From the NCBI GenBank assembly GCA_965644295.1, contig CBFFRP010000210.1:1-64000 (forward strand): DNA of 64,000 bases, in the 5' to 3' direction. Below the pieces are notes generated by a model. It was not told the DNA's origin. It ran no database searches and saw only the letters and a list, made by a program, of their open reading frames with translations. Positions 1 through 51,598 of the stretch are shown here, one piece after another. Both the position numbers and the translations under genes were made by a program. Source of the DNA: Paraphysomonas bandaiensis. Lineage: Eukaryota > Protista > Chrysophyceae. Every line of letters starts with the position of its first letter. Position 1 is the first letter of the stretch.

Positions 1-2
1 GT

Positions 3-281
3 AATTTCGACTCATTTGCCCTCGCGCCACCAACAAATATCGCGGCGTATATTAAACGGGTGAATGGAAACAAAAAAATACCCTACAACAATTCCAAACT
101 ACAGGATCCTCGTGCAGAATCGTGCGGTTATTGGTGCGTGCTCCGGTTGGACTATATGAGAAAGCGATCCATTCTGACAAAATGGTCACTTACCCGAATT
201 CACAACATATTAACTTCACTATTCAATAATGTGGAACAAAACGAAATCATATTGCACAAACTATACTCCGGCGTTTTTTAG
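3..281 (+). pseudogene. C-terminal fragment of an adenain-like (clan CE) cysteine protease of Polinton/PLV/virophage type
   Basis: Frame from nt 3 reads NFDSFALAPP...IPYNNSKLQDPRAESCGYWC, matching the FDS(F/Y)...YN...Q...S.CG.(W/Y)C signature of Polinton/virophage maturation proteases. The catalytic-His region is not visible. Confidence 0.75.
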
Positions 282-302
282 TGCTCTACTAGTAAAAAGT
301 AG

Positions 303-773
303 ATGATCCGCAACGACATAAATCCACTACCCGAGCCACCACGCCCACTGCAACACTCACGCGATAAAGGCAAATCGCAGCAACCACTCGTTCCCAATAA
401 ACGCGTCTTCGGGGTTCTTTTTGAAGGAACGGAACAGGAAATAAAACGAATTCGAGACGAGAAACATGCGTGCGAATTTGTTAAAGCAGTTCGTACCCAT
501 CTAATGTTATTTGACAAATCGCAAAACAAATACAGCGACCGGATATTGCTATGTACGATGCAATGTGTTGAAAATTTCATCTTGGGGAAATCACGGGGTT
601 TATTCCGCGAACGACTTGTCATCGAATGTGTGTCTGATTTTTTCGGCGGTGACGAAGATATCATTCGCAAAATGATCCAACTCCTCATGCCAAAAATTAA
701 AAACTACAAATGGTTCCGCCGTAACATGAAGAAAGCAATCCGTTTTTTTGCAAACTTGCTTTTGACGAAGTAA
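303..773 (+). CDS. Hypothetical 156-aa protein, probably of Polinton-like virus origin
   Basis: Intact intronless ORF 21 nt after the protease stop; compact virus-like packing; no recognised domain. Confidence 0.55.
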   Translation: MIRNDINPLPEPPRPLQHSRDKGKSQQPLVPNKRVFGVLFEGTEQEIKRIRDEKHACEFVKAVRTHLMLFDKSQNKYSDRILLCTMQCVENFILGKSRGLFRERLVIECVSDFFGGDEDIIRKMIQLLMPKIKNYKWFRRNMKKAIRFFANLLLTK

Positions 774-939
774 ATCTCAGGCGGGCTGATGCCATTTCGA
801 ATACAATACTTACTACATGCACTTCTGGGATGTATGGTCTTGCGCGAGAGCCACTGATGGCAGTCGGGACACTGTTTCTTTCGCTTCTTGAATGAAACTT
901 GACTACTGAATAGTACATTATTAATGCCTAAGGAAAAAA

Positions 940-2048
940 AATATCTGACGTGGATTAGATAACAACACCTGCTAGAGCTTCCCCCTGTGCTAATCAATCG
1001 CTTCGTAATCCTGTACGAATTATTAGCAAGAGGAGATTCTAGTTGAATTCGAGTGAGTGCTACAGCTTTCTTAACCACATCAGGCGTGGCGTTAATACCA
1101 TCAATCAGCAGAAGCATCTAGTTATAAGAGCAGTAATATTATATAAATTGCGATATGTATTTGTGTAGATGCATATATTAGTGTATTCAGTGGTATGCAC
1201 AGAAACATAAATGTATACTAATAAATAGCATATTCTCTCAACCACTCACATACTATCAAGTATTGCATACAAAATGTGGTTTCTGTAATTCTACTACAAA
1301 TCTTGTAATACATATCTTGCCTTACAGCAATATTATAGTTTATATACGATGACAATGATGTGACTGTTCCTCACCTGAATGTGGGTAGTGCTAATGTTAC
1401 GGCGACCAACTCCGACTTCCTTCATGATCACTGCAAACTTTTCGTTTTACAACACATCGTTCTAAAAGTATTATATAATGGAGAGTTTATACATATCATA
1501 TATATATACCTGTGAGGCTTTACCGAACACGACACAGGGGCCTCTCACACCATCCTCATTCAACACATAGTGCTCCTTAATACTGACAGCACTATCCATA
1601 TAGTATGTTTTATCACGCTTACGCCGAGCACATAATCTTAGAGCACATGCTGGATTCATACATATCATAGTTAGTCGAGTACTTCCTTGTGTTACATGTG
1701 GATCACGTCGTAGTTGTTTTCCTGTACGTGTACCTCCACAACTAGCTATCTGTTGCATGTGATTCATAACAGATTGGTAGTCTGGAAATACTTGATCTTC
1801 CACAATGAGTTTCATCATAAGAATAAGAAATAGAATGTCTTATCATAGTCAATTCAAGAACACAATTTATTATTGAGTAAGTGGATATATTTGACTACTT
1901 GTTTAAGGGAAACACATCACTGAATTCCATGCATGATAATATCCAGTAACGGTACATACAGATATAGCTATACAGTACACCAGAAATCCCGCAAAATAGT
2001 AGAAAACCCCGAAAAGAGTAGAAACCCCCACAAAAAATGAGAAAACCC
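940..2048 (-). mobile_element. 5' part of a decayed Mutator/MULE-like transposon (terminus plus N-terminal transposase exons)
   Basis: ORF 1818-1471 has a MuDR/FAR1-like Zn-finger pattern (F...C-x4-C..L.A...H...C). Spliced continuations NDVL*NEKFAV...THIQ and MLLLIDGINATPDVVKKAV...SYRI fit the MuDR N-terminus with one in-frame stop. The minus-strand end begins GGG(G)TTTTCTC with repeated GGGTTT motifs. Confidence 0.5.
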
Positions 2049-3090
2049 GAAGAAGTATGAAAATTAAAACCTCAATTTTTTGGAGTTGTGTAAATTATTT
2101 TTCATACTTCGGATAGTTTCGATTCAGCTCCCTCGCAGGATCTCATAGCAAACGAGTGTAATTTTTCTAAACGGTCGAAACTATGTAAAATTGTGTAAAT
2201 TACGTATTATTTGTATATACGGTTGCTGGTATACTGGCGGAGTGTGTTGTATATGAGGGTCATGTGACCATATATAGACACACAGACAGTCTATTGTGGG
2301 GTGAAATTATGACCCCACCTGCAGATTAAAACGAAGGACGATTGATGGAGTCGTTAATGGACTGACATGACTTCACTGTACCGCAAGCTTCATGCTGTTC
2401 AAGACCAGTACGATGACTTTTAACCACTTGAGACAACTGCTTCATGTGTGTGGTTATTACCCTCAGAAGAGACAGTGAAGTGGAAGAGAGCCCTTACAGG
2501 TGGATGAAATACTGCTTGAGTCGTTATATTGCAGAATGTATGCTCAGTGTGCATCCTGTGAAGTTCTCCCGATAATTCAAGGATTCAAGTAATGTGACCG
2601 TTAGCATCTTCATATCCATCAATGGGGGACAGCGTTCATATTAGTATTATTAATGCATGCAATTAATAGCGAAATACCGTCTTATTTTAATTGAATACAT
2701 GCTTTGTCTTTTCATTCATGATACAGATCTGCATTATTGCTTGCTTTTATATTATTTCCTACTTTGCAATATATATTATACTGTGTTTATTATTGTTACT
2801 TATAGTACCTCTAGGTCGTATTGGTATTATATTTTAGGCAGTACCTATAGGTAGTAGGTAGTATTGATACATGTAGGCAGTGCCTATAGGTACATTTTAA
2901 TATAAATAGGGATACTTATCAGTAGGAAATGTAGAGGTTATAGATACCACCTATAGGGAGACGATTAGGTATGTGTATTAGTGCAATATCAGTATGTCGA
3001 TATCGAGCACGAGGAAATAAGGTCTATGTGGAACAGTTACTGTTAGATCTCGAAAAACATGGATTCATACTCTCACTACAAATAGCAGAC

Positions 3091-3377
3091 CTGCCCCATT
3101 CTGAGCGCGTACTTAGGTAGATCCAGGTGGGGTCCGGGTGGGTACCTAACTAATACTTGATTTAAGTTCCATACGTTATTTGCTAGCTACCTACTGAACC
3201 CAACTAGCTACATCATTATCACACGGTATTCAGCGCTGAATATGCAGTGAGAACCCATAGTGGGGAACTGCTGAACTAAGCAATGTGTACATAGGTAGAG
3301 GTGGGCGGTCGCAGCACTCGGCAGCACCCACTGGGGAGCCGCACGCAGTAATTAGTTACGCTGTCAATATGGGGCAG
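3091..3377. mobile_element. MITE-like unit with CTGCCCCAT...ATGGGGCAG ends (mirrored at 5470-5753)
   Basis: Imperfect terminal inverted repeats. The first ~165 nt are nearly identical to 63284-63648 once the nested insertion there is removed. Related termini at 47761 and 48283. Confidence 0.65.
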
Positions 3378-3378
3378 T

Positions 3379-3474
3379 GTCATTTATTGCTTTGACTAGG
3401 CTTTTATATATATACACCGAAAATGGAATGACTAGGAAATTCCACCAAATTGACTAGGTTGAATAATATATCCC
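3379..3474 (+). mobile_element. Outer part of a Mutator-MITE TIR (mirrored at 5373-5468)
   Basis: Homologous to the right TIR of 60824-61372 (GTCATTTATTGCTTTGACTAGG...TTGAATAATATATCCC). Confidence 0.8.
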
Positions 3475-3566
3475 GTTAGAAATGGATATATTTCAAGATG
3501 GAAATATTCGATTAGGGTAATTTAGTGTATTAATTTACATTATACTGTGACGATTCCACACACTAA

Positions 3567-4235
3567 TTAGCGTTTCTGATTTACTATACATTTCCTTAAA
3601 GGATAATCTAGGGTTACTACTCCTCGTATAGCCACCATGTAGTCCTGGCCAAGTAAATCCACATTCTCAAACTGTCCATGTGCAAGGTATGCTGTAACGG
3701 CAGTACCATGGATAATAACATTGGTATCCGATGGTATGTTTTCACCATATCCTAATGCCGCGAATGTTTCAGACCGAAGGTAAGTGCAAGGAGAGCCAGT
3801 GTCGAAAAGGAAATGAACGTTGATGCTTACACCACGCTTGGAAACAATCAAAGGTATAAATATACGGGACCCTGCGCCATATAGTATTCCTTCAATCGGA
3901 AATGCAACATCAGCTTCAGTTGCTTCCAATGCAACAGTCCCTAATTCGTCTCCAATTATACACTTATCCTGTGGTGTTATATCACCGATTAGTACATCGT
4001 AGGCTGCAGGATGGACGGTAACGGTATCACTCGGAAACTCTAAGCTGTCACGTCGTTGTTCCATCAAATTAACGATATATCTCTGTAGAATTGCTAACTC
4101 TTTTCCATTTTCCATTTCTGATGCTATTGAACGAAGAGAACTTAGTTTACTGTTTGGTGACATTTTATTTATTCTATCAGTATCAGACTTTCCAACAATT
4201 TGTTCCAAAACTCCATTGACATCAGTGATATCCAT
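3567..4235 (-). CDS. Clan AA (retropepsin-like) single-domain aspartic protease with ~70-aa N-terminal extension, copy 1 (Asn139)
   Basis: Intronless 222-aa ORF with catalytic FLFDTGSP motif and C-terminal LLGQDY (psi-psi-G-x-D) motif. Confidence 0.88.
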   Translation of the reverse strand: MDITDVNGVLEQIVGKSDTDRINKMSPNSKLSSLRSIASEMENGKELAILQRYIVNLMEQRRDSLEFPSDTVTVHPAAYDVLIGDITPQDKCIIGDELGTVALEATEADVAFPIEGILYGAGSRIFIPLIVSKRGVSINVHFLFDTGSPCTYLRSETFAALGYGENIPSDTNVIIHGTAVTAYLAHGQFENVDLLGQDYMVAIRGVVTLDYPLRKCIVNQKR

Positions 4236-4611
4236 ATTTATCTGTTATTAATGTTTACACTTGATTGAATTAGGATATAAACTATGAATTGACAAGTTAA
4301 TTAGGAAAGAAGAACATAATAACAATCAGAGGAGGAACGTCCGGCCCAAAGTTCATATTCTGAAGTGATATAGGAACCGCGTTATATCGCGAGTCACTTC
4401 AAGTACTAAACTGAAAAGAACATCCTGGCGACACTAATGTATAGTTCAGCACACTCGCGATATAACGCGGTTCCTATATCACTTCAGAATATGAACTTTG
4501 GGCCGGACGTTCCTCCTCTGATTGTTATTATGTTCTTCTTTCCTAATTAACTTGTCAATTCATAGTTTATATCCTAATTCAATCAAGTGTAAACATTAAT
4601 AACAGATAAAT

Positions 4612-5280
4612 ATGGATATCACTGATGTCAATGGAGTTTTGGAACAAATTGTTGGAAAGTCTGATACTGATAGAATAAATAAAATGTCACCAAACAGTAA
4701 ACTAAGTTCTCTTCGTTCAATAGCATCAGAAATGGAAAATGGAAAAGAGTTAGCAATTCTACAGAGATATATCGTTAATTTGATGGAACAACGACGTGAC
4801 AGCTTAGAGTTTCCGAGTGATACCGTTACCGTCCATCCTGCAGCCTACGATGTACTAATCGGTGATATAACACCACAGGATAAGTGTATAATTGGAGACG
4901 AATTAGGGACTGTTGCATTGGAAGCAACTGAAGCTGATGTTGCATTTCCGATTGAAGGAATACTATATGGCGCAGGGTCCCGTATATTTATACCTTTGAT
5001 TGTTTCCAAGCGTGGTGTAAGCATCAGCGTTCATTTCCTTTTCGACACTGGCTCTCCTTGCACTTACCTTCGGTCTGAAACATTCGCGGCATTAGGATAT
5101 GGTGAAAACATACCATCGGATACCAATGTTATTATCCATGGTACTGCCGTTACAGCATACCTTGCACATGGACAGTTTGAGAATGTGGATTTACTTGGCC
5201 AGGACTACATGGTGGCTATACGAGGAGTAGTAACCCTAGATTATCCTTTAAGGAAATGTATAGTAAATCAGAAACGCTAA
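4612..5280 (+). CDS. Clan AA aspartic protease, copy 2 (Ser139)
   Basis: Inverted copy of 3567-4235 differing by one residue. Confidence 0.88.
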   Translation: MDITDVNGVLEQIVGKSDTDRINKMSPNSKLSSLRSIASEMENGKELAILQRYIVNLMEQRRDSLEFPSDTVTVHPAAYDVLIGDITPQDKCIIGDELGTVALEATEADVAFPIEGILYGAGSRIFIPLIVSKRGVSISVHFLFDTGSPCTYLRSETFAALGYGENIPSDTNVIIHGTAVTAYLAHGQFENVDLLGQDYMVAIRGVVTLDYPLRKCIVNQKR

Positions 5281-5754
5281 TTAGTGTGTGGAATCGTCAC
5301 AGTATAATGTAAATTAATACACTAAATTACCCTAATCGAATATTTCCATCTTGAAATATATCCATTTCTAACGGGATATATTATTCAACCTAGTCAATTT
5401 GGTGGAATTTCCTAGTCATTCCATTTTCGGTGTATATATATAAAAGCCTAGTCAAAGCAATAAATGACACTGCCCCATATTGACAGCGTAACTAATTACT
5501 GCGTGCGGCTCCCCAGTGGGTGCTGCCGAGTGCTGCGACCGCCCACCTCTACCTATGTACACATTGCTTAGTTCAGCAGTTCCCCACTATGGGTTCTCAC
5601 TGCATATTCAGCGCTGAATACCGTGTGATAATGATGTAGCTAGTTGGGTTCAGTAGGTAGCTAGCAAATAACGTATGGAACTTAAATCAAGTATTAGTTA
5701 GGTACCCACCCGGACCCCACCTGGATCTACCTAAGTACGCGCTCAGAATGGGGT

Positions 5755-6033
5755 AATTTCGACTCATTTGCCCTCGCGCCACCAACAAATATCGCGGCGT
5801 ATATTAAACGGGTGAATGGAAACAAAAAAATACCCTACAACAATTCCAAACTACAGGATCCTCGTGCAGAATCGTGCGGTTATTGGTGCGTGCTCCGGTT
5901 GGACTATATGAGAAAGCGATCCATTCTGACAAAATGGTCACTTACCCGAATTCACAACATATTAACTTCACTATTCAATAATGTGGAACAAAACGAAATC
6001 ATATTGCACAAACTATACTCCGGCGTTTTTTAG
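5755..6033 (+). pseudogene. 5'-truncated Polinton/virophage-type cysteine protease fragment, copy 2
   Basis: Same sequence as 3-281. Here it is joined directly to the palindrome end, so the N-terminal half is demonstrably absent. Confidence 0.75.
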
Positions 6034-6054
6034 TGCTCTACTAGTAAAAAGTAG

Positions 6055-6525
6055 ATGATCCGCAACGACATAAATCCACTACCCGAGCCACCACGCCCAC
6101 TGCAACACTCACGCGATAAAGGCAAATCGCAGCAACCACTCGTTCCCAATAAACGCGTCTTCGGGGTTCTTTTTGAAGGAACGGAACAGGAAATAAAACG
6201 AATTCGAGACGAGAAACATGCGTGCGAATTTGTTAAAGCAGTTCGTACCCATCTAATGTTATTTGACAAATCGCAAAACAAATACAGCGACCGGATATTG
6301 CTATGTACGATGCAATGTGTTGAAAATTTCATCTTGGGGAAATCACGGGGTTTATTCCGCGAACGACTTGTCATCGAATGTGTGTCTGATTTTTTCGGCG
6401 GTGACGAAGATATCATTCGCAAAATGATCCAACTCCTCATGCCAAAAATTAAAAACTACAAATGGTTCCGCCGTAACATGAAGAAAGCAATCCGTTTTTT
6501 TGCAAACTTGCTTTTGACGAAGTAA
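6055..6525 (+). CDS. Hypothetical 156-aa virus-like protein, copy 2
   Basis: Identical translation to 303-773. Confidence 0.55.
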   Translation: MIRNDINPLPEPPRPLQHSRDKGKSQQPLVPNKRVFGVLFEGTEQEIKRIRDEKHACEFVKAVRTHLMLFDKSQNKYSDRILLCTMQCVENFILGKSRGLFRERLVIECVSDFFGGDEDIIRKMIQLLMPKIKNYKWFRRNMKKAIRFFANLLLTK

Positions 6526-6691
6526 ATCTCAGGCGGGCTGATGCCATTTCGAATACAATACTTACTACATGCACTTCTGGGATGTATGGTCTTGCGCGAG
6601 AGCCACTGATGGCAGTCGGGACACTGTTTCTTTCGCTTCTTGAATGAAACTTGACTACTGAATAGTACATTATTAATGCCTAAGGAAAAAA

Positions 6692-7801
6692 AATATCTGA
6701 CGTGGATTAGATAACAACACCTGCTAGAGCTTCCCCCTGTGCTAATCAATCGCTTCGTAATCCTGTACGAATTATTAGCAAGAGGAGATTCTAGTTGAAT
6801 TCGAGTGAGTGCTACAGCTTTCTTAACCACATCAGGCGTGGCGTTAATACCATCAATCAGCAGAAGCATCTAGTTATAAGAGCAGTAATATTATATAAAT
6901 TGCGATATGTATTTGTGTAGATGCATATATTAGTGTATTCAGTGGTATGCACAGAAACATAAATGTATACTAATAAATAGCATATTCTCTCAACCACTCA
7001 CATACTATCAAGTATTGCATACAAAATGTGGTTTCTGTAATTCTACTACAAATCTTGTAATACATATCTTGCCTTACAGCAATATTATAGTTTATATACG
7101 ATGACAATGATGTGACTGTTCCTCACCTGAATGTGGGTAGTGCTAATGTTACGGCGACCAACTCCGACTTCCTTCATGATCACTGCAAACTTTTCGTTTT
7201 ACAACACATCGTTCTAAAAGTATTATATAATGGAGAGTTTATACATATCATATATATATACCTGTGAGGCTTTACCGAACACGACACAGGGGCCTCTCAC
7301 ACCATCCTCATTCAACACATAGTGCTCCTTAATACTGACAGCACTATCCATATAGTATGTTTTATCACGCTTACGCCGAGCACATAATCTTAGAGCACAT
7401 GCTGGATTCATACATATCATAGTTAGTCGAGTACTTCCTTGTGTTACATGTGGATCACGTCGTAGTTGTTTTCCTGTACGTGTACCTCCACAACTAGCTA
7501 TCTGTTGCATGTGATTCATAACAGATTGGTAGTCTGGAAATACTTGATCTTCCACAATGAGTTTCATCATAAGAATAAGAAATAGAATGTCTTATCATAG
7601 TCAATTCAAGAACACAATTTATTATTGAGTAAGTGGATATATTTGACTACTTGTTTAAGGGAAACACATCACTGAATTCCATGCATGATAATATCCAGTA
7701 ACGGTACATACAGATATAGCTATACAGTACACCAGAAATCCCGCAAAATAGCAGAAAACCCCGAAAAGAGTAGAAACCCCCACAAAAAATGAGAAAACCC
7801 C
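6692..7801 (-). mobile_element. Decayed MULE-like 5' fragment, copy 2
   Basis: Copy of 940-2048; terminus GGGGTTTTCTC at 7801. Confidence 0.5.
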
Positions 7802-14752: not shown

Positions 14753-14942
14753 GAGACTAGAGCGAAGGGGGAGGGGTGTTAAGGTGTGTTATAGGTCGAA
14801 AGGGTAAGTACATATGTGTATCATCTGAAATACATATACATACATATAAGTCACATGACTCCATATGAAGAACACATACATAGATGATCATCACACCATA
14901 CTTCTACATAGGCTTCATAGTAGGATTTCCTACATGGTACGC

Positions 14943-15254
14943 ATGTATGTATGTATGTATGTATGTATGTATGTATGTATGTATGTATGTATGTATGTAT
15001 GTATGTATGTATGTATGTATGTATGTATGTATGTATGTATGTATGTATGTATGTATGTATGTATGTATGTATGTATGTATGTATGTATGTATGTATGTAT
15101 GTATGTATGTATGTATGTATGTATGTATGTATGTATGTATGTATGTATGTATGTATGTATGTATGTATGTATGTATGTATGTATGTATGTATGTATGTAT
15201 GTATGTATGTATGTATGTATGTATGTATGTATGTATGTATGTATGTATGTATGT
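14943..15254. repeat. Perfect (TATG)n microsatellite, ~310 bp
   Basis: Directly visible; explains the MYVC/HTYI pseudo-ORFs. Confidence 0.99.
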
Positions 15255-15385
15255 ACATTTATGATATGAGGGGCTCGCTAAGTATCAATCCTCATAACTA
15301 ACCCACCCTTATCTACACAACCCACCTTGCCTCAGGTGCAATATAACAGGATCATCCGACTACATTTCCACCACAGGCGAGTGCA

Positions 15386-20978: not shown

Positions 20979-23900
20979 ATGAATAAGCACACAGATCATA
21001 CAGTTATATCCGGTAAGAGATTAGGAACAGGAGAACATCCAACTGTTGTGTTTGATTGGGGTAATAATATACACGAGACACCCTCTATACCTGTGCGTAC
21101 AGACCGGATCGAAATCGTTAAAGGTCAAAGAGTGGATTTACATCAATTATCACCATCAACTAAATTGAATAATGAGGGAAAGAACCCATTGAATGGAAGT
21201 AAACCGAAGCAGAGGACTCTTACCCCACCAGCTCGTAGGCCTACAAAGCCTAACACTATCAGTGCAAGTAGAAAATCAGGAGCAAAGATTGACAATAGTC
21301 ATACAGTAAGTAAACGACCACATCATCTTCCAGGTTCAACTGTTCCTCATCTGCGACCTGGTTCTGCAAGAACTCAAAGTGCAGCTAAGTGGCTCCATGA
21401 AGAAAAGAATAAGGTTTTGTAGAATAAATTCGTCCAGTATCGTTCTCTTAATGGATATTTTGCAGATCCAGTCTTCAAAGGAAGATCTCCAGCGACGGCT
21501 CGAAAAGATGCGCCAGCTTGACAATGAAAGGCGAGCGAAGGCGAGTGAACAAGCTGAAGCACAGACGGATACTGACATGCAATTGGCACGAACTGGAAAA
21601 GATCCTACTCATTCCTCGGCATTTTCCACTGCTGTGCTGCGACGTTTGTCCCGCAACAAAGATAAAGAAAAAGACGATGAGAGGGAGAGGCGGAACGTGG
21701 CCGACCGTCCATTCTATGCGCGCGCTACGGTAGACAATGAAAGCGCAGCTGGGTCAACCATGGGGTCCTCTTACAGCGGTCGACCTGCGGTTCCTCGACT
21801 GAGTAAAGTTGTTGTGTTTAGGAGCAGTAAGGATGGTACAGAACAACAGCCTGAGGACCGCCGAGTTTCCGCCTCTGATCACACCGCCGATGATGTTTGT
21901 GAACTAAGTTCGTCTGATGACGAGGGGTGCAAAAAAATTGACAGTCGAAAGGGGGATGCTCTGTTAGTGGTGGCTAGCGGGACTAATGTTGAACTTCCTT
22001 CTCCCGGTGTCGAGATACGCCTTAGACAACAAAATCTTAACTCATCCAATAGCGGAGAAGACTGGGGATTCGATGCAGGCGTGACTTCTAATGCACCTGC
22101 AGCAGTTGAGGGAGGTGAGGATGAGCAATCGTACGGGGGTGATTCTGACTTCGAAGGGGATGACGAACCTGCTGATTCTGCGTCTGGGGAGAATATGGAT
22201 GCTTTATCTGTCGGGATGCGATCGGCTGAGCACAGCACGACGAATACTCTGGAAATCAAACGTCAGAAGCGTAAGGAGGCTGCGAGGGAGTACCTGGAAC
22301 AGAGGCGTCGCAAAGCTGCGGAAGAGGCCAAGCGTAAACGAGAGCATGCGCGTAAGGAAGAGGAAGCGAGGAAGGCGCGCTTGGAGAATCTCGATGAGAC
22401 TCGCCGTGCAATCCTACGGTCCACGAAGAAGCACAAAGCGAAGTCTGTCGTAGAAAATGGTGGAGGTACTACTACTCATTCGTCCAAAGTGACAGGAGTA
22501 TCGGTATTTGGGGAGTCTATTTCTGCTAATTCCAGTGGTGCTGATGCGGCCTCGCCAAGGAGTTCAATTCAAGCACCCTCCATTGGCGTTCCATCAGAGC
22601 CAACGCACAACGGAGTTAGCGGAGTGAATATCGCTCTCGCTAGTGCTGTTCTTGGAGACGATTTCTTGCGTAGGGGGAAATCTGGGAATACTGAAAAGGA
22701 TGTACAGACTATACCAAGACGTCGCTCCCGTGTCTCCTCCCACACAACAGCCACAAATGCTAGAGCTCCACTCTCAACCGGCACAGTGTACAGGGATAGG
22801 GAATTTATTGGACTTGACGGTAAAAAGCGCGGTGGAATTCAGCAGCGGGAAAGGAGCAGGTCTGTTGGTTCCCTGAACAACAAACGCAGAGACTCTACTG
22901 CAGCTCCGAGGGCCAAATCCGCTGTACGTGATCAACCAGCTCCGCGAAGGTTTTTTGCTGGATCAGTAAATACTATATCCGGGGACAAACCTTCATCGAT
23001 GGAGAAGCCACGTGGTGCCCGTAGCGGGGAACGAGTGAAGCCTGACGTACCGAGACAACGCTCTCTTGGACCTTCGAAGTTGCGTCATACTGCTGCTCCC
23101 CGAGAGAAGACGACAGGTGCTGACAATAACAAGGAAAATGTTTCTGGTCCGAAACGAAATATTAAATTCACGCGAGGTGCACAGGGTAGTAACAAGCGTG
23201 TCCGGAAATCATCGCGTTCTCCACTTCGAAAGAAGAGATTGGGACACGACACTGACATGAATGCGCACATAGTAGATTTGATCAGTGATGATGTGCTACT
23301 TCCACCACGCAGTGCTGATGCTGATAAGTCTAGTGGCATTTCCGTCAATGCTCGCACTCCAGCTGAGTCTGTGCCTGACGACGACCTCATTAGGACGGTG
23401 CGTGAGATCATGCAATCCAGAGATGGAAGTGGGAATAAGGGCCCGATCTCTGGTAATAGTCCACCACAACCTGGAGATGTTACTATACTGGCCAGTAGAA
23501 ATGAGGCCGCCGCCGCTAGACTGATGCAATCCATTGATCGTCTACGAGGAGAGATGGCGGGATACTCGGATAATATTAAACAAATTGTGTCGGTAAGAGA
23601 AAGTACAGATGAAATTGCGCTATTGCGGGCCTCTATCCAATCAAGACTCTCGGCTGCCATAAGCGCAGCATCGGATCATAATTCAGACTCTGATGGTCCT
23701 CCATCTCCGCCTTCTGAATCGGGGGATGAAAGTGAAGGTGATTTGTGGAACGAGGGCTTAGACACGAGACATCAAAGGACTTCAGATATGACGGAAGACT
23801 TTGGGAAATTTTCGCCAAGTGACAGTATGTCTCACTCTAGTCCGTCCGTCCGAGAGGATTTAAGACACGACGATATCGCCAACCAGCCTCGCGTTGATAC

Positions 23901-26900
23901 TCGGCAGTGTGAAGATCCTTCAGGAGAGTCTTTGGAAAATGCAGTTGGATATCGGCCAGATACAACTTCCCCAAGACCATTAAGTGCTAAAGGTCGAACT
24001 CGCACGGTACCTTCTTCTCACGAGGGCGGTGTACATGACATTGCGGATTTTCCGAACTATCCTGGATCTCATTCCGGAGTAGTTGAAGATATAGATTATG
24101 GAGATATTCTTGTAAACCAGCAAATGGGTCTTCTTCGAGATAAACGTGAGATTCTCCGCCAGTTCGGCAACATTTCTCAGTCGGAGGAAGGAATGGGTCT
24201 CAGTGGCGACGACAATCTTGTGTGGGGCAATTCCACATATCGCGTGGAAAATGTAAATGGCCAAGAGCGGCTAGTGAAAACTTCGCTATCTCCGTTAGAT
24301 CATGAGCATCGTTCTGAAGGAAGACCAAGTGTCCCTACACTGAGGAATGTCGGTATGCTTGCAGGGGTATTAGACTTTCCAGTTCATGAAACACAGGATG
24401 GGGGAAATAGGGACTATAGTGATGACTACAGCGACTCGGATGCTACTAGTGATGCCCTTTTGAACTCTTCTGATGACCATCGTGTAGTGTCGATATTCGC
24501 TAATGAAATTCACCGCCAGAGACAGATCGAGGCGGAACAGGAGAGGCAGGAGGAAGTCCGTCAAATGCAGATCGCTGAGGCGGTTGAAAGGGCACAGACG
24601 TATATCGAACACGCTCCTGTGTCGCCACCGACTGAACCTGTGAGTAAGGTAGACCCCAGCATGTATATTTCGCCCGCCAACACATCCGCTGGAGATATCG
24701 ACCTTGAAGACAGATCGATCTCACCACGTACCTACTGGGACATGATGATGGCTAGGAGTACCCTACCACAAGTTCAGCGACAGCGCATATCCAGTCCTCC
24801 GAAAATCGGGATTGAATCAAGATTATCTCTGACTGAAAAAACAGAAGGGACTGAGAGTTTAGTGGAAGATGTGAATAGGACAAGAGATACGGCATCCGAA
24901 CCACTGCCTGAAGCAGTTGGAATGTCCGGATCACCGGTACAGGCTCGATCACCATCCCCCGCTGGACCCAAACACCATGAGAGTAAGGCAGTTAGCAGCA
25001 CATCTGGTGATCCTGTGCCCCAGAAGTACAGTGGGGCGGAGCTACGGTTAATGGTGGTTGAGGAACTTCACAGGCAGGAAGGATTATTCAACATGGCAAT
25101 GGAGTTGGCGGAGGCCGAGCAGACCCACACAGTTCATACTGCATCACAGGCGATGCAGGAAATCACTGCTCAGGCTCGGGCTGAGGCAGAACGTTTGGCA
25201 CGTGGAAATGAATTGGCACAAATGCATCACGCCTATGAAATGTCTATCGCAACAACTACTGCGGAGGCCGCTCTGGCCACTCAAATGGAGCTTACGCGGA
25301 GGGACGCAGCACTCGTAGAGCTCCAAGGACAGATCCAGCAACAGGGTGCTGAGCAGGAGCAGCTAACTTACCTTGCTCAGACTATGCAGAACATTAATGT
25401 CGCCTCAGAGTTGCTGGATATGCGTCAACTGGCCCAGGGAATTGAAAGCAGGGCATCAGGTACTGCATCGTTGGAAAAGGTTAATACACATTCTGCCGCT
25501 ACAATGACAGATTTTCAATTGATAGAACCAGAGAAAGTTGGTTCAGAAGTTGCTCCAGTAGACCTTAATTACGGTAACGTTGCTCAGGGCAAGGATGAGT
25601 GTGCTGTTCGCTCCGATGATGGTGAGTCAGAATATTCTGCATCGTTTGACCAGGAGTCAAGGATACTCGACCAAAGTGCCAGCAGGCCCCCATCGGTTCG
25701 GTTTCCTGATAACTTGTCATCATGGGGCCATGCCTCTGCAGTGGATGAGGTGGATGATGGGGACATGGATGAGGAGTCTTACGAGATGACTTTTGCGGAA
25801 GAGAGTCATGCCCGGATGGTCACAGCGCCGCGCCCTAGTACGGCCGAAGACTCCGTCGCAGAAGTTGAGGATAGCATAGTTCGTTCAGTCAGTCAGGAGG
25901 TTGAAGATGATGTAGTCGGTGCAGATAGCAGCATTTATGATCACGATAGACAAAAGATGGAGCAATCTGGAGCCAACTACACTGACTACTCATATTCCAT
26001 GGATGAATATTCCGAGGATCAAGTATCTCAATCTGTCCCTCGAATCAGTTCTGGCGCCTCTGCTAAGGCGGCTCCTCCCCTCATTAGCGATACCTGCGCT
26101 CCACCGGAAAGTCAGGCTGATATAATCGCTGAGTATTTGACTGACATTGATAATCGCATAAAGAGTCAAGAAAAGTCTATATCCATGCGCCTTCAGATCG
26201 AAAAGAGACGCATGGAGCATGAACTCGCTCAACTTAAGCAGCGACGTAGTCCCAGGAAAGGGGATGGACGCGCAATGCCTCTGGACCAGTACGAGGAAGC
26301 TGTACGCCAGGTGATGATGGAGTACAATGCAAGCCGCGCAGAGCTAGAGAGAGAGAGGTGGACTGCGAATGCCCGCGCTTACAAAGAGCGACGTAAGTAT
26401 GAACAGTTACGCAAAGATCTGCTACTATACGGGTCAGCAGAGGAAAAGTCTAGACAGTCCTCTCAGAAAAGTTCCGAGCAAAACAAGCTAACCAGTGCCG
26501 CCCTAGCCGCTTTGGAGGCCAGTGAATCGTATGACACCAGTGTGGACGCGTCCGTTCCAGAGATGAGTACCGTGCAGATGAAGCATAAATATCTGAATTC
26601 ACCGATTAAGAGGGTTGAAGACTCAGTGATCAGCAGTGCGCGGTCTGTGCCAGAGTATGACGAGAGTTTTGCCTCTATAGTGACCGACAACCAAGGGACT
26701 TCTTCTCAGCAGCAATCTTATGCAGCAGAGTCGTTTGACTATGAGGACGATGTGGAGGAACCATCCGGAGAATACTCCTCTGAGGTTTTCGAGGCCTTGT
26801 CGACTGTCGAAGCGTCCTTTAGGAAGCCGCCCAAGCCATCGAAACCAACAAATCGTCTTGATACGTCAACTGTGTCAACTGTTGACCTTGATATAGAGAC

Positions 26901-29900
26901 CGGACTGGATAGTAATGTCCCTAGCGAGGAGGAGCTTGTTCGCAGAAGCAAGGCACTTGAGAAGAAACGAAAAGTTGCAGCTGACATCATCCGCAAACGA
27001 AATGAAGAAGTGGAACGCCGAAAGAAACTTATACGGATTGAGGAGGAAGAAAAGGAGGTGGATAGAATGATAAAGGAAATGATGCGGTTCGACATTGACA
27101 GCGAACTGAAAGAACATCGAAGAAAGGCCCAACTCGAAGCAAAAAAAGTTGCCGAAACTGCTGCTCGTGAACTCAAGATATCGTCTCTTTCCAAAAAGAA
27201 GGCGTCGCATGCGCCAATTCCCACACCTGCAGAAAAGTATTCAAATTCTTCATCTACAGCTAACGTTTCTGTTGCAATGAATCAATCACACGCTGCTTCT
27301 GTCTCTTCCGTGGACTCAGATTATGGTAGTGGGGACTTCGAAAAAGTAGACAGTGTGAAAGACGAGGAAACAGTTGACGATGTCTATGAAGAGGACTACA
27401 GCAGTGACGGAATAACTGAAGTGATCGACGATGAAGTGGTTGACGAGGCAACGCGTGCAGATTCTGTAGATAGTGTTGACGAGGAGGATCACGCTGATAC
27501 TGTGGACGATTCTTACGCTAGCATCGACGAGGACTTCATAGAGGAGGCTGCAGGTGTAGTGACAGATTCTTCCGGCCCGGTTGTAGTCTCTTCCTCAATA
27601 GGCGTCACTTATGATGACGATTTCGAAGACGAGGAAAGCACAACAGTGCCACCAAAATCCTCAAGAAATGTTTCATATGAATATTTATCTGACTTCGAAG
27701 ACACAATTGTGGAAGATGCTGTGGCAAAAATGGTTCATGAGAGTCAAAATCTTGCCCCAGTCTGGGAAGGAGGACATGAAAGCAATGACAGCATTTCTAA
27801 CGATACCCTCTATGACCTCGAGAGTAGTCTAGAGCTACGAAAGCAACGTGTCCAGGCTCTTAAAGAAAAAATTGACAAACTACAGACCGAAAAGAAGCTG
27901 GAGCGTTTGCGCGCAAAGCAAGCAGAGCGAGAACGCTTACGCGATGAAGAAATGGTCCTCATGCGTCGTCTTAAAGAGGAAGAGGAGATTTACAAAAAAG
28001 AAAAGGATCGTATCATGAAAGGAATATCAGCACCCTCTGATGAAAAGGATGAAGATGATATGGTGGTGGACGAACTTATGGGCGTGCTCACAGAACCCTT
28101 GGAGGCGGAAGCTGATGTCATGCGCGAGGAGGATGATCTGGCAGGTGATAGCTGGGGGTCAGACCAGGCTGGAGGATTTGATGTCACTGCTGTTGATGTG
28201 GGTGGGGAGGTTACAGCCAGAGTAGTGAAAGCAGAGGCTGCCACTATTGTCCAGGCGAGAGTTAGAGGATTTTTGGCCCGGCGTCGCGCGTATGACTTAA
28301 AACAGCAATTGCAGGAAACTGCAGTCGATGATTATTCCGTGGACGGGGATCTTGTTGATGAGTATAAAACAACCCGTGTCATTGAAGACATTGCAATCGA
28401 TGACTCATTTTGCAGTGTAAGTGATGTCGAGTCACCCAATGACTCTGACATTGAAGGCGGCGATATCGATGCACAGGCGGTTCAGTTAGCTGAGATGGAG
28501 ACCGCTGTGAATCATCTGAAGAATGAGATATCTAATAGAGACCGATTAGAAAAAGAAGTGGAAGTGGACTCACTTCATGCCTCTATTTGTGAAAGTCGTG
28601 AAAGTCCATTAAAAATTGAAACGAACAATATGGTTTTTGACGAGGTATCAAAGAGTTGGGTTAGTGCAGCGGGTAAAGACTACGAAGTGGATGTGAGTGG
28701 GTTCGACGATAGCGATCGACAATCTGAATCAGACAGTGAGATCAATGCGACTAACTCAGCGGCAGATAAAAGCAAGTCTTCGTCGCCAACTTCTCGTTCC
28801 CCTTCCGGCCAACATGGTGAGGGTGTTATTGTTGAACGTGAGGTCGAGAGTGAGGACATGATATCAGACAAGCACACATGTGGAATATTAGAGGAATCTG
28901 TCGTGTCATTGGAACACAATGGGGAATCTGATCCGTCCAATGCTAATGTAGACAGTGTCCAGAGCATTCAGTTACAAGATTCCGGGCGTGATACTATTGC
29001 GTGGAATGATGTTTTGCATGAACAGTATCCACAAGAGGTCTCAAATACTGCTGATGCGGGGGGTGATGGGGAATCTATGAGTGAGATGAACGAAGATGAG
29101 AGTGGCGTGGATGACCAGACAATTGATACTCTGAAAACTGTCGGTACTCTGGAGACTATCGAAACACTGGAGTCGAAAGAAAAACAATCCCATTCTGTCC
29201 ATGAGGTGCAACATGAGACGCCTCCAGTAGGAAGTGAGATGTCGGACCCGAGTCGGCTGGGACAGAGCACTGACGCTCCTCACAATTCCGTTACTCCTGA
29301 CAACATCGGTATTCTCGACATAGCCGAAGGACAAAATGTTACTGCATCTGACTATGAGAACCCGGATCCTATGAATACCACCAAGGACTCCACAGTTGGA
29401 TATGATGATGATTACGAAGAAGAATTCGAAAATGAATCATCCGAAAAGTCCAATTTCAAAGCTAGTATTCATAGTGCAGAGGAGGAACATGAAGAAAGTA
29501 TCAGCGTTGTGGAGGAGTTAGAAGAGAGCATTGTGACGGAGGATGGCGATGTCCTTCAGGATGGTAGTGATATGTTCGAGGATAGTGTGGAGAGGGTAGG
29601 TGATAGAGATGTGGACCGAACGATGGATAGTATAGGTGTTGACCGCGTAGAGGACGTCAGATCACCCGTGAAGGATACAAAGAGTCCTGTTACGCATTCT
29701 GAGCAGACTCAAATACAAGAGTCTGTTGAGCCAGGTGCCTGTGTTCCGGGCTCAGATGATGTACAAGATGGCAGGCCTGGTGACATTAGTCTCGTCACTG
29801 CAGGTGATGAGGAGTACAATGATGAGTTCGAAGTTGACACTTCTGTCAAGTCAGCTTTAGAAACTGTAGATTTACCTGTAGACGATAAGATTGCAGAAAC

Positions 29901-31648
29901 CGAGTTAAAATCAAGTGAACCATATAATGTAAATGCTGAGGCGGAACATGACGAAAGTATCAGTGTTGTGGAGGAGTTAGAAGAGAGCATTGTGACGGAG
30001 GATGGCGATGTCCTTCAGGATGGTAGTGATATGTTCGAGGATAGTGTGGAGAGGGTAGGTGATAGAGATGTGGACCGAACGATGGATAGTATAGGTGTTG
30101 ACCGCGTAGAGGACGTCAGATCGCCCGTGAAGGATACAAAGAGTCCTGTTACGCATTCTGAGCAGACTCAACTACAAGAGTCTGTTGAGCCAGGTGCCTG
30201 TGTTCCGGGCTCAGATGATGTACAAGATGGCAGGCCGGGTGACAATAGCAATGCTGCAATGGAGTTTTTGAAGGGAAAGACGCAGAGAGAGAAACTGTCC
30301 TTGGCTAGTGATATTACTGATGCTCTAATGCGTCGTTTGTTTACAAGTGTGGGATCATCTCCAGATATTTTGGAGATGCTACAGAAGCAAGCTCCTATAG
30401 AAAATGAGTTCTCGAATACCGAACAGAGCACTGACACGAAATGTTGTGAAAGTGTTCCTTCAAATGAAAATAGCAAAGAGGATGACAAAATCTTGCATGA
30501 CTACAGCCCTGCCGAATCTCTAGAAGATGTTGCCACAGATGATGAAGTTTCTGTGGATGTGGAATATGAAGAGGATTTTGAGGATATACCGGAGGACTCT
30601 GGTCCGTCGTCTCCGCCGAAATCCCCCACAGAGGTGCAGAATGAGGTGACCGCGCTTTCTCTAAAGGACTTGCCCTCTCTTTCCAAAGTTGGTGCAAGTA
30701 GTAGACCTCCAGTTATGAGAGATTCATCTCTGGATGACCTGCTAGGGGCCGATGACGATGCGACTGATACTCCTTCGGTTACTCCGAGGTTTGGAAAGCC
30801 ATTGTGTGCGCGCGAAACTGATGCCTTTGACCCTTCTCTTGATGATAAACAAACAGAAACGTCTGTAATGGACATCTGGAATCGCAGAAAAATGGTGAGT
30901 GAGTGTGAAGCTCGTTCGTTTTGTCATATTTAACCCCAGGAGTATATTGACGAGCTGTTCGAGTACATTAGTGATTCAGATTTCGATCAGTTGGTGCAAG
31001 ATCTGTCAAACCCTGACTTTGACTGCAGTGTAAGTAAACATAATATGTCCACCCACCGTTTAGCTAATCATCATGGGCGCAGGACTCTGTCGTTTTATCG
31101 GAGGAAATATATTTCAATATTGAGTTACGCCGAGTGCAAAATGCTCCTCCTGATCAGGAGAAAGACACTGATGGTATCACTCCTGAGGCCACACAGATGC
31201 ATAACAAAATCGTGTTCGACAGGTAGGTGCCAGTGCTGGCATATTTTTTATTGACTGAACTTGCCGTCGATGTATTCGTGTATGTAGAGTGAATGAGGTG
31301 CTGACTGAGATACATGCCCTTCGTTTCGGTTCTAGAGGACATGGCCCGCCAGCCACTTACAATAAGCGAATGATTGCCCAAAATATGCCCTTGAAAAGAG
31401 ATATTATATATGAGTTAGTTAAAGACCGACTCAGACCTCACTCTTTGAAATCGAATACTATAACACTGGAAGACGGAACAACAGTAGTACAGTCGTCGAG
31501 TATGTTGGACAATGTCAAAATTACCGCACTTGACAGTCTGAGAGATGAAATTCAAGCCAATCTGTTAGATACGGCAGAGTATATTACAGATGTCATTCTT
31601 GCGCGCATGTTAGTCCGGGTTGCAAATATTGTTATTGCCTATTTATAG
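20979..31648 (+). CDS. Very large acidic/coiled-coil protein with IQ motif and DUF4378-like C-terminus (CEP350/TRM-like centrosomal protein)
   Basis: Exon 1 20979-21413; 9.4-kb exon 2 21466-30894; small 3' exons giving QMHNKIVFDR|VNEVLTEI and EIQANLLDTAEYITDVIL; IQ motif ATIVQARVRGFLARR. Confidence 0.7.
29485..30244 (+). repeat. Intragenic in-frame ~300-bp duplication (29485-29785 and 29944-30244)
   Basis: The 100-aa block EH(E/D)ESISVVEEL...DGRPGD repeats at offset 459 with few substitutions. Confidence 0.95.
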
Positions 31649-32040
31649 TCGTCAATATAATTTGCGGTGTTTGCTGGAACAAACGTTCAGCGTGTATATC
31701 TGAGTAGTGTATGTGTTTCTTAATAGTAATTTAGTTCAGTCGATCATTATTACTCGTTTATATATTTGTTTGTCGAAAAGTCGACCAGCGATGGACCATA
31801 ACATTGCTTAAAAGTGCTAGCAAGATGTTAGTTAGAGGTAATCAAAGTATTCATACTGTTGCGTGTACACGAGTACACGAACTGTTCAAAACTGATGAGG
31901 CCTATATTCCTATATGGCTTTCGCAAGTCTTTGTTATCTACACGGTTGCCGAGCCAACACCGTCCTCGACATCGTTCTCAATACTATGGTCAATTGACAA
32001 ATGTGAACCTGAAAAGTCCTTTCTCGATCAAGAAAATCGA

Positions 32041-32510
32041 CTTTAAACACCAGTTTTAAACGCTTTCTCACAATTTCCCAGCATGTCCTTCGTTTCAGCT
32101 TATGCGTCTCCTTTCTGATAACACAATTAAAGAGCCTCAGACACTGGCCGAAGCGAACAAATTGGATAGAAGATAGGAGGTGCATAAACAGGAGCGAAGG
32201 ACTCTACGATGATATCATGCAGATGGCGCAGGTGAAATTAGTAGGACAGTATGTAAGGCAATATCTACGTCAAAACAGCAGTACGAGGACTGTACAACTT
32301 TCCTGGTCTCCAAGAGTCCAAGAGATACCCCAGAAATGAATTCTCTAAACATACCAATCGCACAGTGAAGGAGTTGGCTCTAGCCATCTTGCTTGACAGT
32401 GGCCAGCCATCGGTGTTCTGGTTCAAAGCAGTCTTACATGCGGTTTATGAAATTAACATGTTACCTACTGTATGGCTACCGTGCCTAAGGAGCTGCGTCG
32501 CAAGGAAGGA
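32041..32510. mobile_element. Patchwork of Copia RT/integrase fragments related to the 51244-56422 element (copy at 40697-41166)
   Basis: RRTCWEIVR/KLVFKV on the minus strand; TIKEPQTLAEA, YHADGAGELVGQ, LAILLDSGQPSVFWFKAVLHAVY and VPKELRRKE on the plus strand. Confidence 0.85.
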
Positions 32511-33942
32511 TAATCGATTTTTAGATTGTCGCATGAAAAGTTGTGTTTATTAGTGCGTGTATATTCTCATTTCTGATGTCACACATATCACATATATATT
32601 GAAGTTTGAACTAACTATATATCATCTTTAGATGTTCTAAATACGTGTTTGGTACTGAGTATGGTATGTTTGTCCTATACGCATCTTCATGAGTACTGCG
32701 TCTACTTGCTTAATGTGGTGAACACGACATTAATAATGGCAATACAGTGAGTACTATATTATAGCCGCTAGTGTATTGAATTCCACTGCAGTTGTATTTT
32801 AGTAGTATTATCTGAGTGGTACAGTTTAAGATTACACTCAGACCAGTAGAGACAGTTTTTGAGCCTAAGACGTTCAGTACAATTACCGCCCAGCTGTCTC
32901 AGATTAGTACAATACAGACATCTGAAATAGTGCCTCCTCTCCATATTTCTGTAGCAAGAGGCTCTTGAGGTTCACTTGCAAGCAGAGATGAAGTTAAGTA
33001 TAGCATGATGGATTATGGTCACCTGTAGTGATAAACAGTGCATTGAATCTATTCTATAGAGCTACTTTGATGATCTTCTCTCTTCCACTCACAGTCTTAA
33101 CCAGTGCATGCACATCATACTCAACTCATATACATATACACGTAGATCACGTAGCTATGATAGAGGGGGATGCAGTTTCTAATGCATCTTGAATGAAAGG
33201 TATAGTCAGAGTTATTACAGGTACTGCATGTACAGCCATTGGCTTCACTCCTTCTGCAGTATCTAGAGTGCATTGAGTTGGAATGTTGGAATGTAACTTC
33301 TGGCTGGGCCGGATACATACATACGCACATGTCTGTCTCTGTTATGATCATATTGTGGAAAAAACTGTATTTTCCACACATATATGTACCTAAAATCCCT
33401 AATTTTGTCATTATTGAGACGCCTCCTACTGTAGGAAAAAACACAGATTTGTTAGAAAATCAAGAAATCAGCTCTCAATCAAAAACAGGGGTTTCTAATA
33501 GCACACTTTGGTGGGTTTCTAGTATTTCAAACAAAAATTCTCAATTTTTAACATAAATTCTGCTGTATTTAACCTCATCTCGAGAAATACTGCAGCAGAA
33601 ATGGTACAGTATATACATATAGCAATATAGCCGTATACCGTATACAGCTGTACATAGACTGCAGTATGTTGTATGTGGTATATGCACGTATCGGCGTCGT
33701 TCGTATATTTTTGTTGAAAGATGCCTCTAATATTGAGACAACAATTATCTGTATTTCAGCCGTAGTAATACTGAAGTTATATAGAATATTTTCGCTTCCT
33801 TTTATTCCCGAAATATAAGATGCATACACATATCTCTCTATAGCTCTATGTGTATATATATATGTGTATGTATGTATATCTACCTTAACAGCAACTACAT
33901 CAGATACAATACATCATTTCCTCTCATTTCCTCTCATTCATC

Positions 33943-34813
33943 ATGAATATATTCAATCATTCATTAGATTGTTTAATATTTGATCTTGATGGGACACTGT
34001 ATGATGCATCTAACGGTTACGTGGATCATATTCGTTCCAATATATTTCAGTTTATGTATGATCAGGTACACACACACATACACACACACACACATACATA
34101 CACACACACACATACATACACATACACATACATACATACACACATACATCTATGGATATATACATATATAACATTACTATATAGGAACTTGTTAGCAGAA
34201 CTGAATCTGCAGAAGATATCTGGCGACCTCTCTTTAAAGAACATAATCAAACATATAAAGGGCTTCGTAGTGGGGGGTTTGTGTTTGATAGGGACGAATA
34301 CTGGAGATTTCATAGAAGAGGAGTCGCTGATTACCTCTCATCTAATAGTGAACTGGCACAGATGTTATCTGATATGCCTCTAAAGAAGTATATATTTACA
34401 AATTGTCGAGAACGTGAGGCCATGGAGGCATTGGAGGCTCTTGGAGTAGCGGATCAGTTTGAGAAGGTCTATGGTGCCGACTTTCTTGGAGATTGTTGTA
34501 AGGTAACTTAGTTGTTGAACGATATTGCTGATTGAGTAATCAATGTTTTTTGTTTTAGCCCCAATTAGAGGCTTTCGACCTTGTACTCGCAGATATAGGG
34601 GTACAGCCAGAAAACACTATGTTTTTCGAGGACTCTTTAAAGAATCTGAAAGCGGGAGCATCCCTTGGAATGGCAACAGTTTTGGTTAAAGGAATGACCG
34701 CTGATGAAGAGGGATATTCCGATGGAGAAAATTTTAATTGTGTTGTATCAACGCTAAGTGATGGTGGTAGAGAGTTACGAGATAAAGTCCCAATATTATT
34801 CGCGCGCAATTAA
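33943..34813 (+). CDS. HAD-superfamily hydrolase, SDT1/pyrimidine 5'-nucleotidase-like, copy A (3 exons)
   Basis: IFDLDGTLY, FTN, CK|P and FFEDSLKNL...GMATVLV motifs; introns at 34066-34184 and ~34503-34558. Confidence 0.88.
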
Positions 34814-38406: not shown

Positions 38407-38652
38407 CGCCGGTGAGTCCACGGACACACGATAAAGGCGAATTTCATATCACACAAAAAGAACGGAAGTGGTTGCACCTTGGTGCTTGCGGCGACGCACA
38501 AGCAGCTTTCGTAGCGTTAAATAGTAGGATAAAAGAGTTTGTATTGATTAGTTACGGGTAGTGGTCTAACTAGTATGACTAGCATTCTTCTAGCCACTAA
38601 TTGATGCAAGGTCTCAACGCCTATTGCTAAATAATCAGACATTCACCCACCC
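35785..38652 (+). mobile_element. 5'-truncated non-LTR retrotransposon
   Basis: Absent from duplication copy B (empty site GATGTATGTGG near 44370). Flanked by TATG at 35781-35784 and 38653-38656. Confidence 0.93.
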
Positions 38653-51550: not shown

Positions 51551-51598
51551 CTCCCACTCAATGAACATATCAGAATATACTGTGATGAGCAAGTCTAC

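Follow-up and report, generated by a model that had tools for sequence, protein, structure and literature searches.

A probable inverted duplication of a cellular retropepsin-like protease gene with transposon-end breakpoints in the chrysophyte Paraphysomonas bandaiensis

The window analysed here is a stretch of 64,000 nucleotides from Paraphysomonas bandaiensis (assembly GCA_965644295.1, contig CBFFRP010000210.1, positions 1 to 64,000), and close to its left end it carries a 2.66-kb palindrome in which a gene for a retropepsin-like protease is present twice, once in each arm. Between positions 2000 and 7000 the repeat finder returned a single large inverted repeat, with a left arm at 3094–4394 complementary to a right arm at 4453–5753 (1301 nt each) and a non-palindromic spacer of 58 nt at the centre (4395–4452); the arms account for 2602 of the 2660 nt, i.e. 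most of the unit. Base-by-base comparison found one mismatch between the arms (3820 T versus 5027 C), and their complementarity stops at both outer ends. No tandem repeats were found within 3094–5753, and an inverted repeat of such length and identity cannot arise by chance. Read in gene orientation, each arm opens with 159 nt of upstream sequence, followed by the gene, by a 3' flank of 188 nt that terminates in a truncated CCTAGTC-repeat module, and by a miniature inverted-repeat transposable element (MITE), at whose distal terminus the arm-to-arm homology ends. The order along this part of the window is region A (1–2048), region B (2049–3093, unique in the window, between the left copy of A and the left arm), left arm, spacer, right arm and region A again (5753–7800). 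A first-pass annotation of this stretch had described 1301-bp arms around a 58-nt spacer with a shared 376-bp centre, and the repeat finder and the direct comparison confirmed this in every detail.

The left copy of the gene lies at 3567–4235 on the minus strand and the right copy at 4612–5280 on the plus strand. Both are complete open reading frames (ORFs) of 222 aa that diverge and are read outward, with 376 nt between their ATGs, and the arm mismatch alters residue 139, which is N in the left copy (N139) and S in the right copy (S139). The catalytic motif of the protein, FLFDTGSP (residues 142–149), places the DTG in a hydrophobic context. In a 58-member alignment of the family, D145 is kept in 51 sequences, T146 in 44 and G147 in 51, and the glycine of the LLGxD motif (G196) is conserved in 57. 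The best Pfam match is Asp_protease_2 (E 0.008, 17.3 bits, below the 24.3-bit cut-off), a model matched weakly by 27 of the 58 family members (best E 3.6e-6), and the clan AA models of NCBIfam were weakly matched by just two. Nothing significant was obtained when solved structures were searched by sequence with the family profile. An AlphaFold model built on the same alignment reached a predicted local distance difference test (pLDDT) value of 93.7 and consists of an N-terminal four-helix domain (residues 1–65) and a C-terminal beta domain. The comparison by Foldseek that the first-pass annotation had proposed put the Rickettsia protease APRc on top (5c9b, E 3.7e-4, target template-modelling score 0.61), followed by the proteases of xenotropic murine leukaemia virus-related virus (XMRV), human T-lymphotropic virus 1 (HTLV-1), human immunodeficiency virus (HIV) and equine infectious anaemia virus (EIAV), the matches to APRc, XMRV, HTLV-1 and HIV having a probability of about 1 and E values of 4e-4 to 1e-2; in a viral structure library, caulimovirus and retrovirus proteases were matched. 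On the basis of this model, we are confident in assigning to the protein a retropepsin-like fold with DTG and LLGxD motifs. The protein would presumably act as a homodimer, because it contains one retropepsin-type lobe with a DTG and a hydrophobic–hydrophobic–Gly–x–Asp motif. The annotated complete, intronless DTG protease in each arm is thus borne out by the ORFs and the predicted fold, and its statement that no gag, reverse transcriptase (RT) or ubiquitin-like (UBL) domain is present held in the Pfam scan: gag, RT and integrase domains were absent in and beside the arms, and the 222-aa protein matched neither UBL nor PF09668.

An exhaustive HMMER search gathered 552 clusters of relatives, most of them 150–360 aa long, at E <= 1e-3 (clustered at 50% identity). 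The best 150 of the 552 clusters have lengths of 79–360 aa, are mostly stand-alone proteins of 150–250 aa and match residues ~72–218, and there are no polyproteins among them. Relatives with 42–59% identity occur as single genes amid sedolisin, DOT1, kinase, F-box and ankyrin genes, and therefore the protease is a host gene and not retroelement debris. A contig encoding a protein that is 57% identical (L020) extends 832 nt upstream of the gene with no mirrored copy, and a protein-pattern scan of Joint Genome Institute (JGI) metagenome contigs gave only seven short loci, in which no mirrored copy was seen; a palindromic arrangement does not characterise the protease family. Two known origins were rejected. 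A protease of a long terminal repeat (LTR) retroelement would require gag, RT or integrase nearby, and the best 150 of the 552 family clusters do not exceed 360 aa. Membership in the DDI1 family is contradicted by the missing UBL and PF09668 matches and by an N-terminal part that is a four-helix bundle.

Single-domain, non-viral clan AA peptidases are known from Rickettsia (APRc/RC1339) and from eukaryotes (DDI1, SASPase and NIX1) (Llorens et al. 2009, PMC2642776; PMC4140852). The 222-aa protein resembles them in having one DTG lobe with the hydrophobic–hydrophobic–Gly–x–Asp motif, encoded outside a retroelement polyprotein, whereas it has its own N-terminal four-helix domain and lacks the UBL and ubiquitin-associated (UBA) domains of DDI1. 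Judging from the model, it belongs structurally among these peptidases and would work like them. It is a member of a conserved, stand-alone cellular family of single-domain clan AA peptidases, and since this family fails curated sequence thresholds and lacks the UBL domain of DDI1, it is most aptly described as a new and uncurated family of a known clan.

The occurrence of the locus in nature was followed in wild contigs from Tara Oceans, other marine metagenomes and Logan assemblies, which were chosen by the exact protein and mapped on the window. The exact protein was found on 23 wild contigs, 18 with the S139 variant and 5 with N139. Ten of the wild contigs, produced by several assemblers and including L004, L005, L007–L011, L013 and L014, contain 39–67 nt of the opposite arm, then the spacer and then the arm, and all ten stop within 67 nt of re-entering the arm. 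Two further contigs (L012 and L016) begin inside the spacer, L017 begins exactly at the inner arm boundary, and L015, which is 1301 nt long, matches the right arm from end to end. Breaks at the arm boundaries, such as those of L015 and L017, are expected from de Bruijn assembly of a collapsed inverted repeat that branches at both ends. Because independent wild assemblies carry the spacer together with both arm ends, the centre of the palindrome is, as far as assembled sequences can tell, natural and not a product of multiple displacement amplification (MDA) or of long-read fold-back in the present assembly. Its recurrence in many independent metagenome assemblies also agrees with the annotated view that the structure is not a random chimera. 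When JGI metagenome contigs were scanned for exact matches to 32 nt of the spacer, none was obtained. SPAdes coverage was compared in three samples, where the values for the gene contig and for the contig with region A were 11/7, 8/4 and 4.7/3; although these depths are low, the ratio (~1.7 times) suggests two gene copies.

Across 4328–5406 the wild contigs are identical to the window except for the N/S site, the outliers L006 and L018 apart. One otherwise invariant gene is thus combined with at least three types of 3' flank. The MITE-bearing flank found in the window is present in L008, L011 and L013–L015. In two MITE-less variants (L004 and L009; L005–L007, L010 and L012) the CCTAGTC-repeat module continues, and it is on these contigs, L004–L007, L009, L010 and L012, that the gene occurs with the same centre and no MITE. 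In L004 the module (98.9% identical) directly follows the protease gene. In L006, a different 126 nt lies upstream of the spacer, with only AGT in common with the arm end; this contig could represent the ancestral, non-palindromic configuration, and comparison with it reveals a 3-nt microhomology, AGT, at the centre junction. The other outlier, L018, has an identical N139 coding sequence, but at its start (L018:1–140) the 125 nt that precede the ATG diverge by about 12% and contain indels. L018 lacks both the spacer and the inner arm end and could reflect a paralogous or recombinant promoter context.

A complete MITE of about 287 bp forms the distal end of the left arm (3091–3377); its terminal inverted repeats (TIRs) are imperfect, and each of the two starts with CTGCCCCAT. 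The right arm has the same MITE (5470–5753), in which TAA stands in place of the final 3 nt (CAG) where the arm meets region A. In an end alignment the two MITE ends share about 22 of 29 terminal bases, and the second, inverted terminus lies at 3377/5470. The outer 133 nt of each arm recur with 98% identity at 63287–63419, within a third, partial copy on the plus strand (63284–63685) that retains roughly the first 170 nt and into which a MITE of ~195 bp is nested, interrupting it. The nested element, at about 63418–63612, has TIRs beginning GGAGACGTTTTTTGACAAAGTGGACCAG and TGG on either side. A MITE-like element of 523 bp at 47761–48283 has only the ~19-nt terminus in common with the arm MITE. 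The motif CCCCATTCYGAG occurs five times in the window (3094 plus, 5742 minus, 47761 plus, 48272 minus and 63287 plus), compared with 0.01 occurrences expected from shuffles. The element has the hallmarks of a MITE, namely TIRs on a short non-coding unit and copies in both arms and at 63284. The annotated placement of the outer palindrome boundaries on a transposon terminus is therefore correct in that the arm ends coincide with a real terminus, but this terminus belongs to a self-contained MITE of ~285 bp, with its second TIR at 3377/5470, and not to the palindrome as a unit.

The arm MITE is inserted inside the CCTAGTC-repeat module of the 3' flank of the gene (5378–5469, plus strand, cut short by the MITE, with a mirror copy at about 3378–3469); the module is uninterrupted at 61372–61004 of the window and in wild contigs L004–L007. 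The proximal junction of the MITE interrupts the module and its distal flank does not continue it, with no target-site duplication seen. Target-site duplications of 2–10 nt were searched for at all transposon-like ends and none was found, and the palindrome flanks, ...GCAGAC(CTG) and TAATTTCG, share no direct repeat of 2–10 nt. No transposase domain was detected in the ORFs scanned with Pfam. The targets of Tc1/mariner (TA) and piggyBac (TTAA) were considered and rejected, as the empty site in wild contigs, at the junction of region A with the sequence W described below, does not have the required sequence beside the breakpoint. CCTAGTC/GACTAGG-rich modules are found downstream of several different genes in the window (60824–61372, 38652–38849, 44255–44565 and 3379–3474), and the one at 60824–61372 forms an inverted repeat of its own, with 185-nt arms that are 99% identical and a 179-nt spacer.

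The two copies of region A, both on the plus strand, are 99.95% identical, with one mismatch. Bases 1–3 of the window (GTA) equal 5753–5755, where the right copy is joined to the right arm, and the right end of this copy falls in a minisatellite of 19–20 nt. Because 1–2048 repeats 5753–7800, positions 1–7800 as assembled would represent 1.36 units of a 5752-bp period, and the start of the window is most likely a contig start placed on a repeat boundary. The wild contigs that contain region A (L029–L034) provide a view of its natural context. There it is preceded by a sequence, W, that the window does not contain, and W and A together encode a 157-aa ORF (L034:73–546). The 3' part of this adenain-like cysteine-protease ORF is at 5756–6033 in the window (plus strand), where the arm end cuts it at 5755/5756, at codon ~67, and it is cut again at the window start (4–281). 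The family profile of the 157-aa ORF matched S273R of African swine fever virus (ASFV) with E 3.6e-8 and adenain with about 9e-5, and Pfam Peptidase_C5 (clan CE) was matched by 8 of 30 members of the family. Relatives of this ORF are small proteins that occur in multiple copies on very large contigs (as many as 167 member sequences in a cluster), a pattern suggestive of a Polinton- or virus-like mobile element. The samples with an intact W–A arrangement are those whose gene contigs lack the MITE. In some samples, wild contigs (L032 and L033) follow region A only up to its position 773, beyond which a gene with an F5/8 type C domain comes next, and therefore region A itself is structurally polymorphic in the population.

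The exact 5752-bp period raises the question of whether the first 7.8 kb is a tandem or circular unit, integrated or joined by the assembler, in which 1.3-kb inverted repeats separate regions of 58 nt and 3.09 kb in the manner of the yeast 2-micron plasmid. The first 2048 nt of this segment equal its last 2048 nt, as a circular or tandem molecule would show, and the right end of the repeat falls in the minisatellite. Region A is, however, chromosomal in wild contigs, where the ORF truncated by the unit is intact; neither A nor B was found to contain a gene for replication or for a recombinase, and nothing indicates circularity. We regard such a unit as very improbable.

The palindrome is best explained, with a probability that we put at roughly 60%, as a natural inverted duplication of a cellular gene with breakpoints at MITE ends in a marine stramenopile; at the level of DNA structure, inverted gene duplications with transposon-end breakpoints are already known. 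The duplication would have arisen when DNA was broken and rejoined at the distal MITE end. This could have happened by transposase cutting at the MITE end followed by illegitimate repair, or by alternative transposition or re-replication involving the same MITE end on two sister chromatids; by either route, the centre would then have been sealed by end-joining at the 3-nt AGT microhomology. The right arm is joined to a truncated viral-type protease gene, a derived joint. The near-identity of the arms may stem from recency or from arm-to-arm gene conversion. The net effect would be two independently promoted copies of the protease gene, bearing on dosage and supplying a dimer pool from two alleles (N139 and S139), and not a cargo that moves; a hairpin RNA and bidirectional regulation may also result.

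Alternative transposition of maize Ac/Ds elements generates composite insertions as well as duplications in inverted or tandem arrangement (Zhang et al. 2014, PMC4270019; Zhang et al. 2013, PMC3744419). The present locus is similar to these in its duplicated host DNA with transposon termini at the outer borders, in the adjacent direct duplication (region A) and in the internal microhomology joint. It differs in that the arm MITE has no assigned superfamily and no known transposase, in that no target-site duplication is visible, and in that one and the same MITE end forms both outer termini; the mechanism is read from anatomy only. That the palindrome arose from a transposase acting on one MITE end on two sister chromatids, or that it is a still mobilisable composite element, seems doubtful. 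The ampliconic palindromes of sex chromosomes are comparable in their near-identical inverted arms, each with an intact gene, and in their short unique spacer; they are tens to hundreds of kb long, compared with 1.3 kb here, and gene conversion is an inference only in the present case.

Five observations weigh against an inverted duplication at MITE ends. The palindrome is located 3 kb from a probable contig start and within a structure of 5752-bp period, the kind of place in which an assembly deserves the least trust. The junction between arm and region A occurs in the window only, a different sequence (W) preceding A in the wild. No short-read contig covers more than 67 nt of the second arm, and the full second arm is therefore inferred for wild genomes. 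The orientation of the spacer relative to the gene is constant in all 11 wild contigs; a palindrome should yield both orientations unless assemblers break the tie deterministically, and we can only attribute the constancy to such tie-breaking. Finally, no transposase was found for the arm-MITE family, which leaves the transposon-end mechanism by analogy only.

Several of these points are what one would see if the second arm, or the whole left 5.75 kb (A–B–left arm), were a fold-back chimeric read, a haplotype join or a graph loop, with a single gene copy following a short inverted repeat in the genome. Base 1 of the window aligns exactly with the last base of the palindrome, as if the contig started at the boundary of a repeat node; the arms and the copies of A each differ by one single-nucleotide polymorphism (SNP), of which that in the arms is polymorphic in the wild; and the junction ORFs that were tried are unrecorded in wild contigs. 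These exact-product look-ups covered ORFs across A/C, in B and across B/arm, the truncated A ORF and GPKOW, and the junctions are not thereby refuted. The centre with both arm ends is nevertheless present in independent Illumina assemblies from at least ten samples, whose stops within 67 nt fit a long palindrome, and the exact arm-boundary breaks of L015 and L017 and the higher coverage of the gene contigs point the same way. Moreover, a simple fold-back artefact would be palindromic to the contig end, which this palindrome is not, and since region A is repeated directly rather than inverted, the two halves are not alleles. On balance, an artefact of this kind appears improbable.

The remaining alternative, and the one put forward in the first-pass annotation, is that the 2.66-kb unit is itself mobile, i.e. 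a non-autonomous foldback element or a composite (macro)transposon with inverted MITEs as its termini and the protease genes as cargo. Its outermost bases are indeed the terminus of a TIR family found elsewhere in the window, and two inverted MITEs flanking a segment have the layout of a composite transposon. In addition, the flank that follows the arm end in wild contig L008 matches region B for about 13–16 nt only and then differs, and the gene cut at the right junction is whole in wild contigs. A mobile unit should, however, be flanked by a target-site duplication, and there is none at the palindrome flanks. In wild contigs the left flank (B) does not adjoin the right flank (A), which is preceded by W, and the CAG missing from the terminus in the right arm points to an illegitimate joint and not to a transposase cut. 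Beyond its MITE part, the arm has no other copy in the 64 kb, wild contigs show one gene context, and the protease relatives are never seen in such a unit. Known foldback elements, such as Drosophila FB and Galileo (with TIRs of up to about 1.2 kb), have arms of subrepeats and are dispersed with target-site duplications. The palindrome is like them in its very long inverted arms and short middle, whereas its arms consist of a unique protein-coding gene and a nested MITE at one locus, without target-site duplications. The description as a foldback element that is essentially all TIR is thus not supported, given arms of unique gene sequence, the missing target-site duplication and MITE-less strains in the wild, nor is that of a protease cargo, given relatives that are single-copy cellular genes in ordinary neighbourhoods. 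As for the other copies or empty sites that the annotation had proposed to look for, no second copy of the unit exists within the 64 kb, while wild contigs do provide the gene with the same centre and no MITE. Overall, we find a foldback or composite transposon unlikely, and nothing shows the protease travelling as transposon cargo.

The surrounding window consists of eukaryotic nuclear DNA with few introns and many Copia and MITE elements, and it contains genes for GPKOW, a protein kinase, ribosomal protein uS5 and a class-3 lipase and a Copia retrotransposon. The named relatives of GPKOW are all stramenopiles (Chrysoparadoxa, Chaetoceros, Pelagophyceae, Cyclotella, Ectocarpus and Skeletonema), most at 32–39% identity, and the closest ones (40–51%) are metagenomic only. 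The host is accordingly placed among marine stramenopiles, and a human origin of the window was rejected in view of these relatives, the scarcity of introns and the abundance of Copia and MITE elements. An Rfam scan of the window gave no match. The sole retroelement in the window is the Copia-type LTR retrotransposon at 51244–56422, with 307-bp LTRs that are 100% identical, a 5-bp target-site duplication (ACAAG) and a single gag-pol ORF of 1505 aa on the minus strand; its insertion appears to be very recent. A tandem segmental duplication of ~8.6 kb (31635–40286 versus 40291–46001) is 94–99% identical, and a diverged, inverted partial copy of it is found at 61469–62990. One copy contains an extra 2868 bp (35785–38652) with an intronless ORF of 874 aa without a Pfam domain; the indel junction has a TATG microhomology, and the ATG of the ORF is at the junction. 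An uninterrupted ORF of 3184 aa extends over 21379–30933, with a GC content of about 50% compared with about 40% around it, no Pfam domain at E <= 1e-3 and an internal 459-bp repeat at 29475/29934. Long TGTA/TACA and CA-rich microsatellites are located between genes (14865–15260, 34055–34180, 40211–40300 and 42650–42800), and some of them border the segmental duplication.

These results leave current views of transposons and proteases unchanged. They show that an apparent fold-back artefact can be checked against independent environmental assemblies, and in this case the centre proved natural. A by-product is a large clan AA family of 552 clusters, each of which combines an N-terminal helical domain with a retropepsin lobe; the models of Pfam and NCBIfam all stay below threshold on this family, and the cluster members that were looked up have no descriptive name. 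Should sister-chromatid transposition at the MITE end or composite mobility be true, it would be the first such case outside plants, one in which MITE ends duplicate and rearrange a functional host protease gene and MITE-less strains with the intact W–A gene persist in the ocean. The locus itself gives evidence, from a marine protist in the wild, that the surroundings of a functional gene vary structurally in connection with MITE ends.

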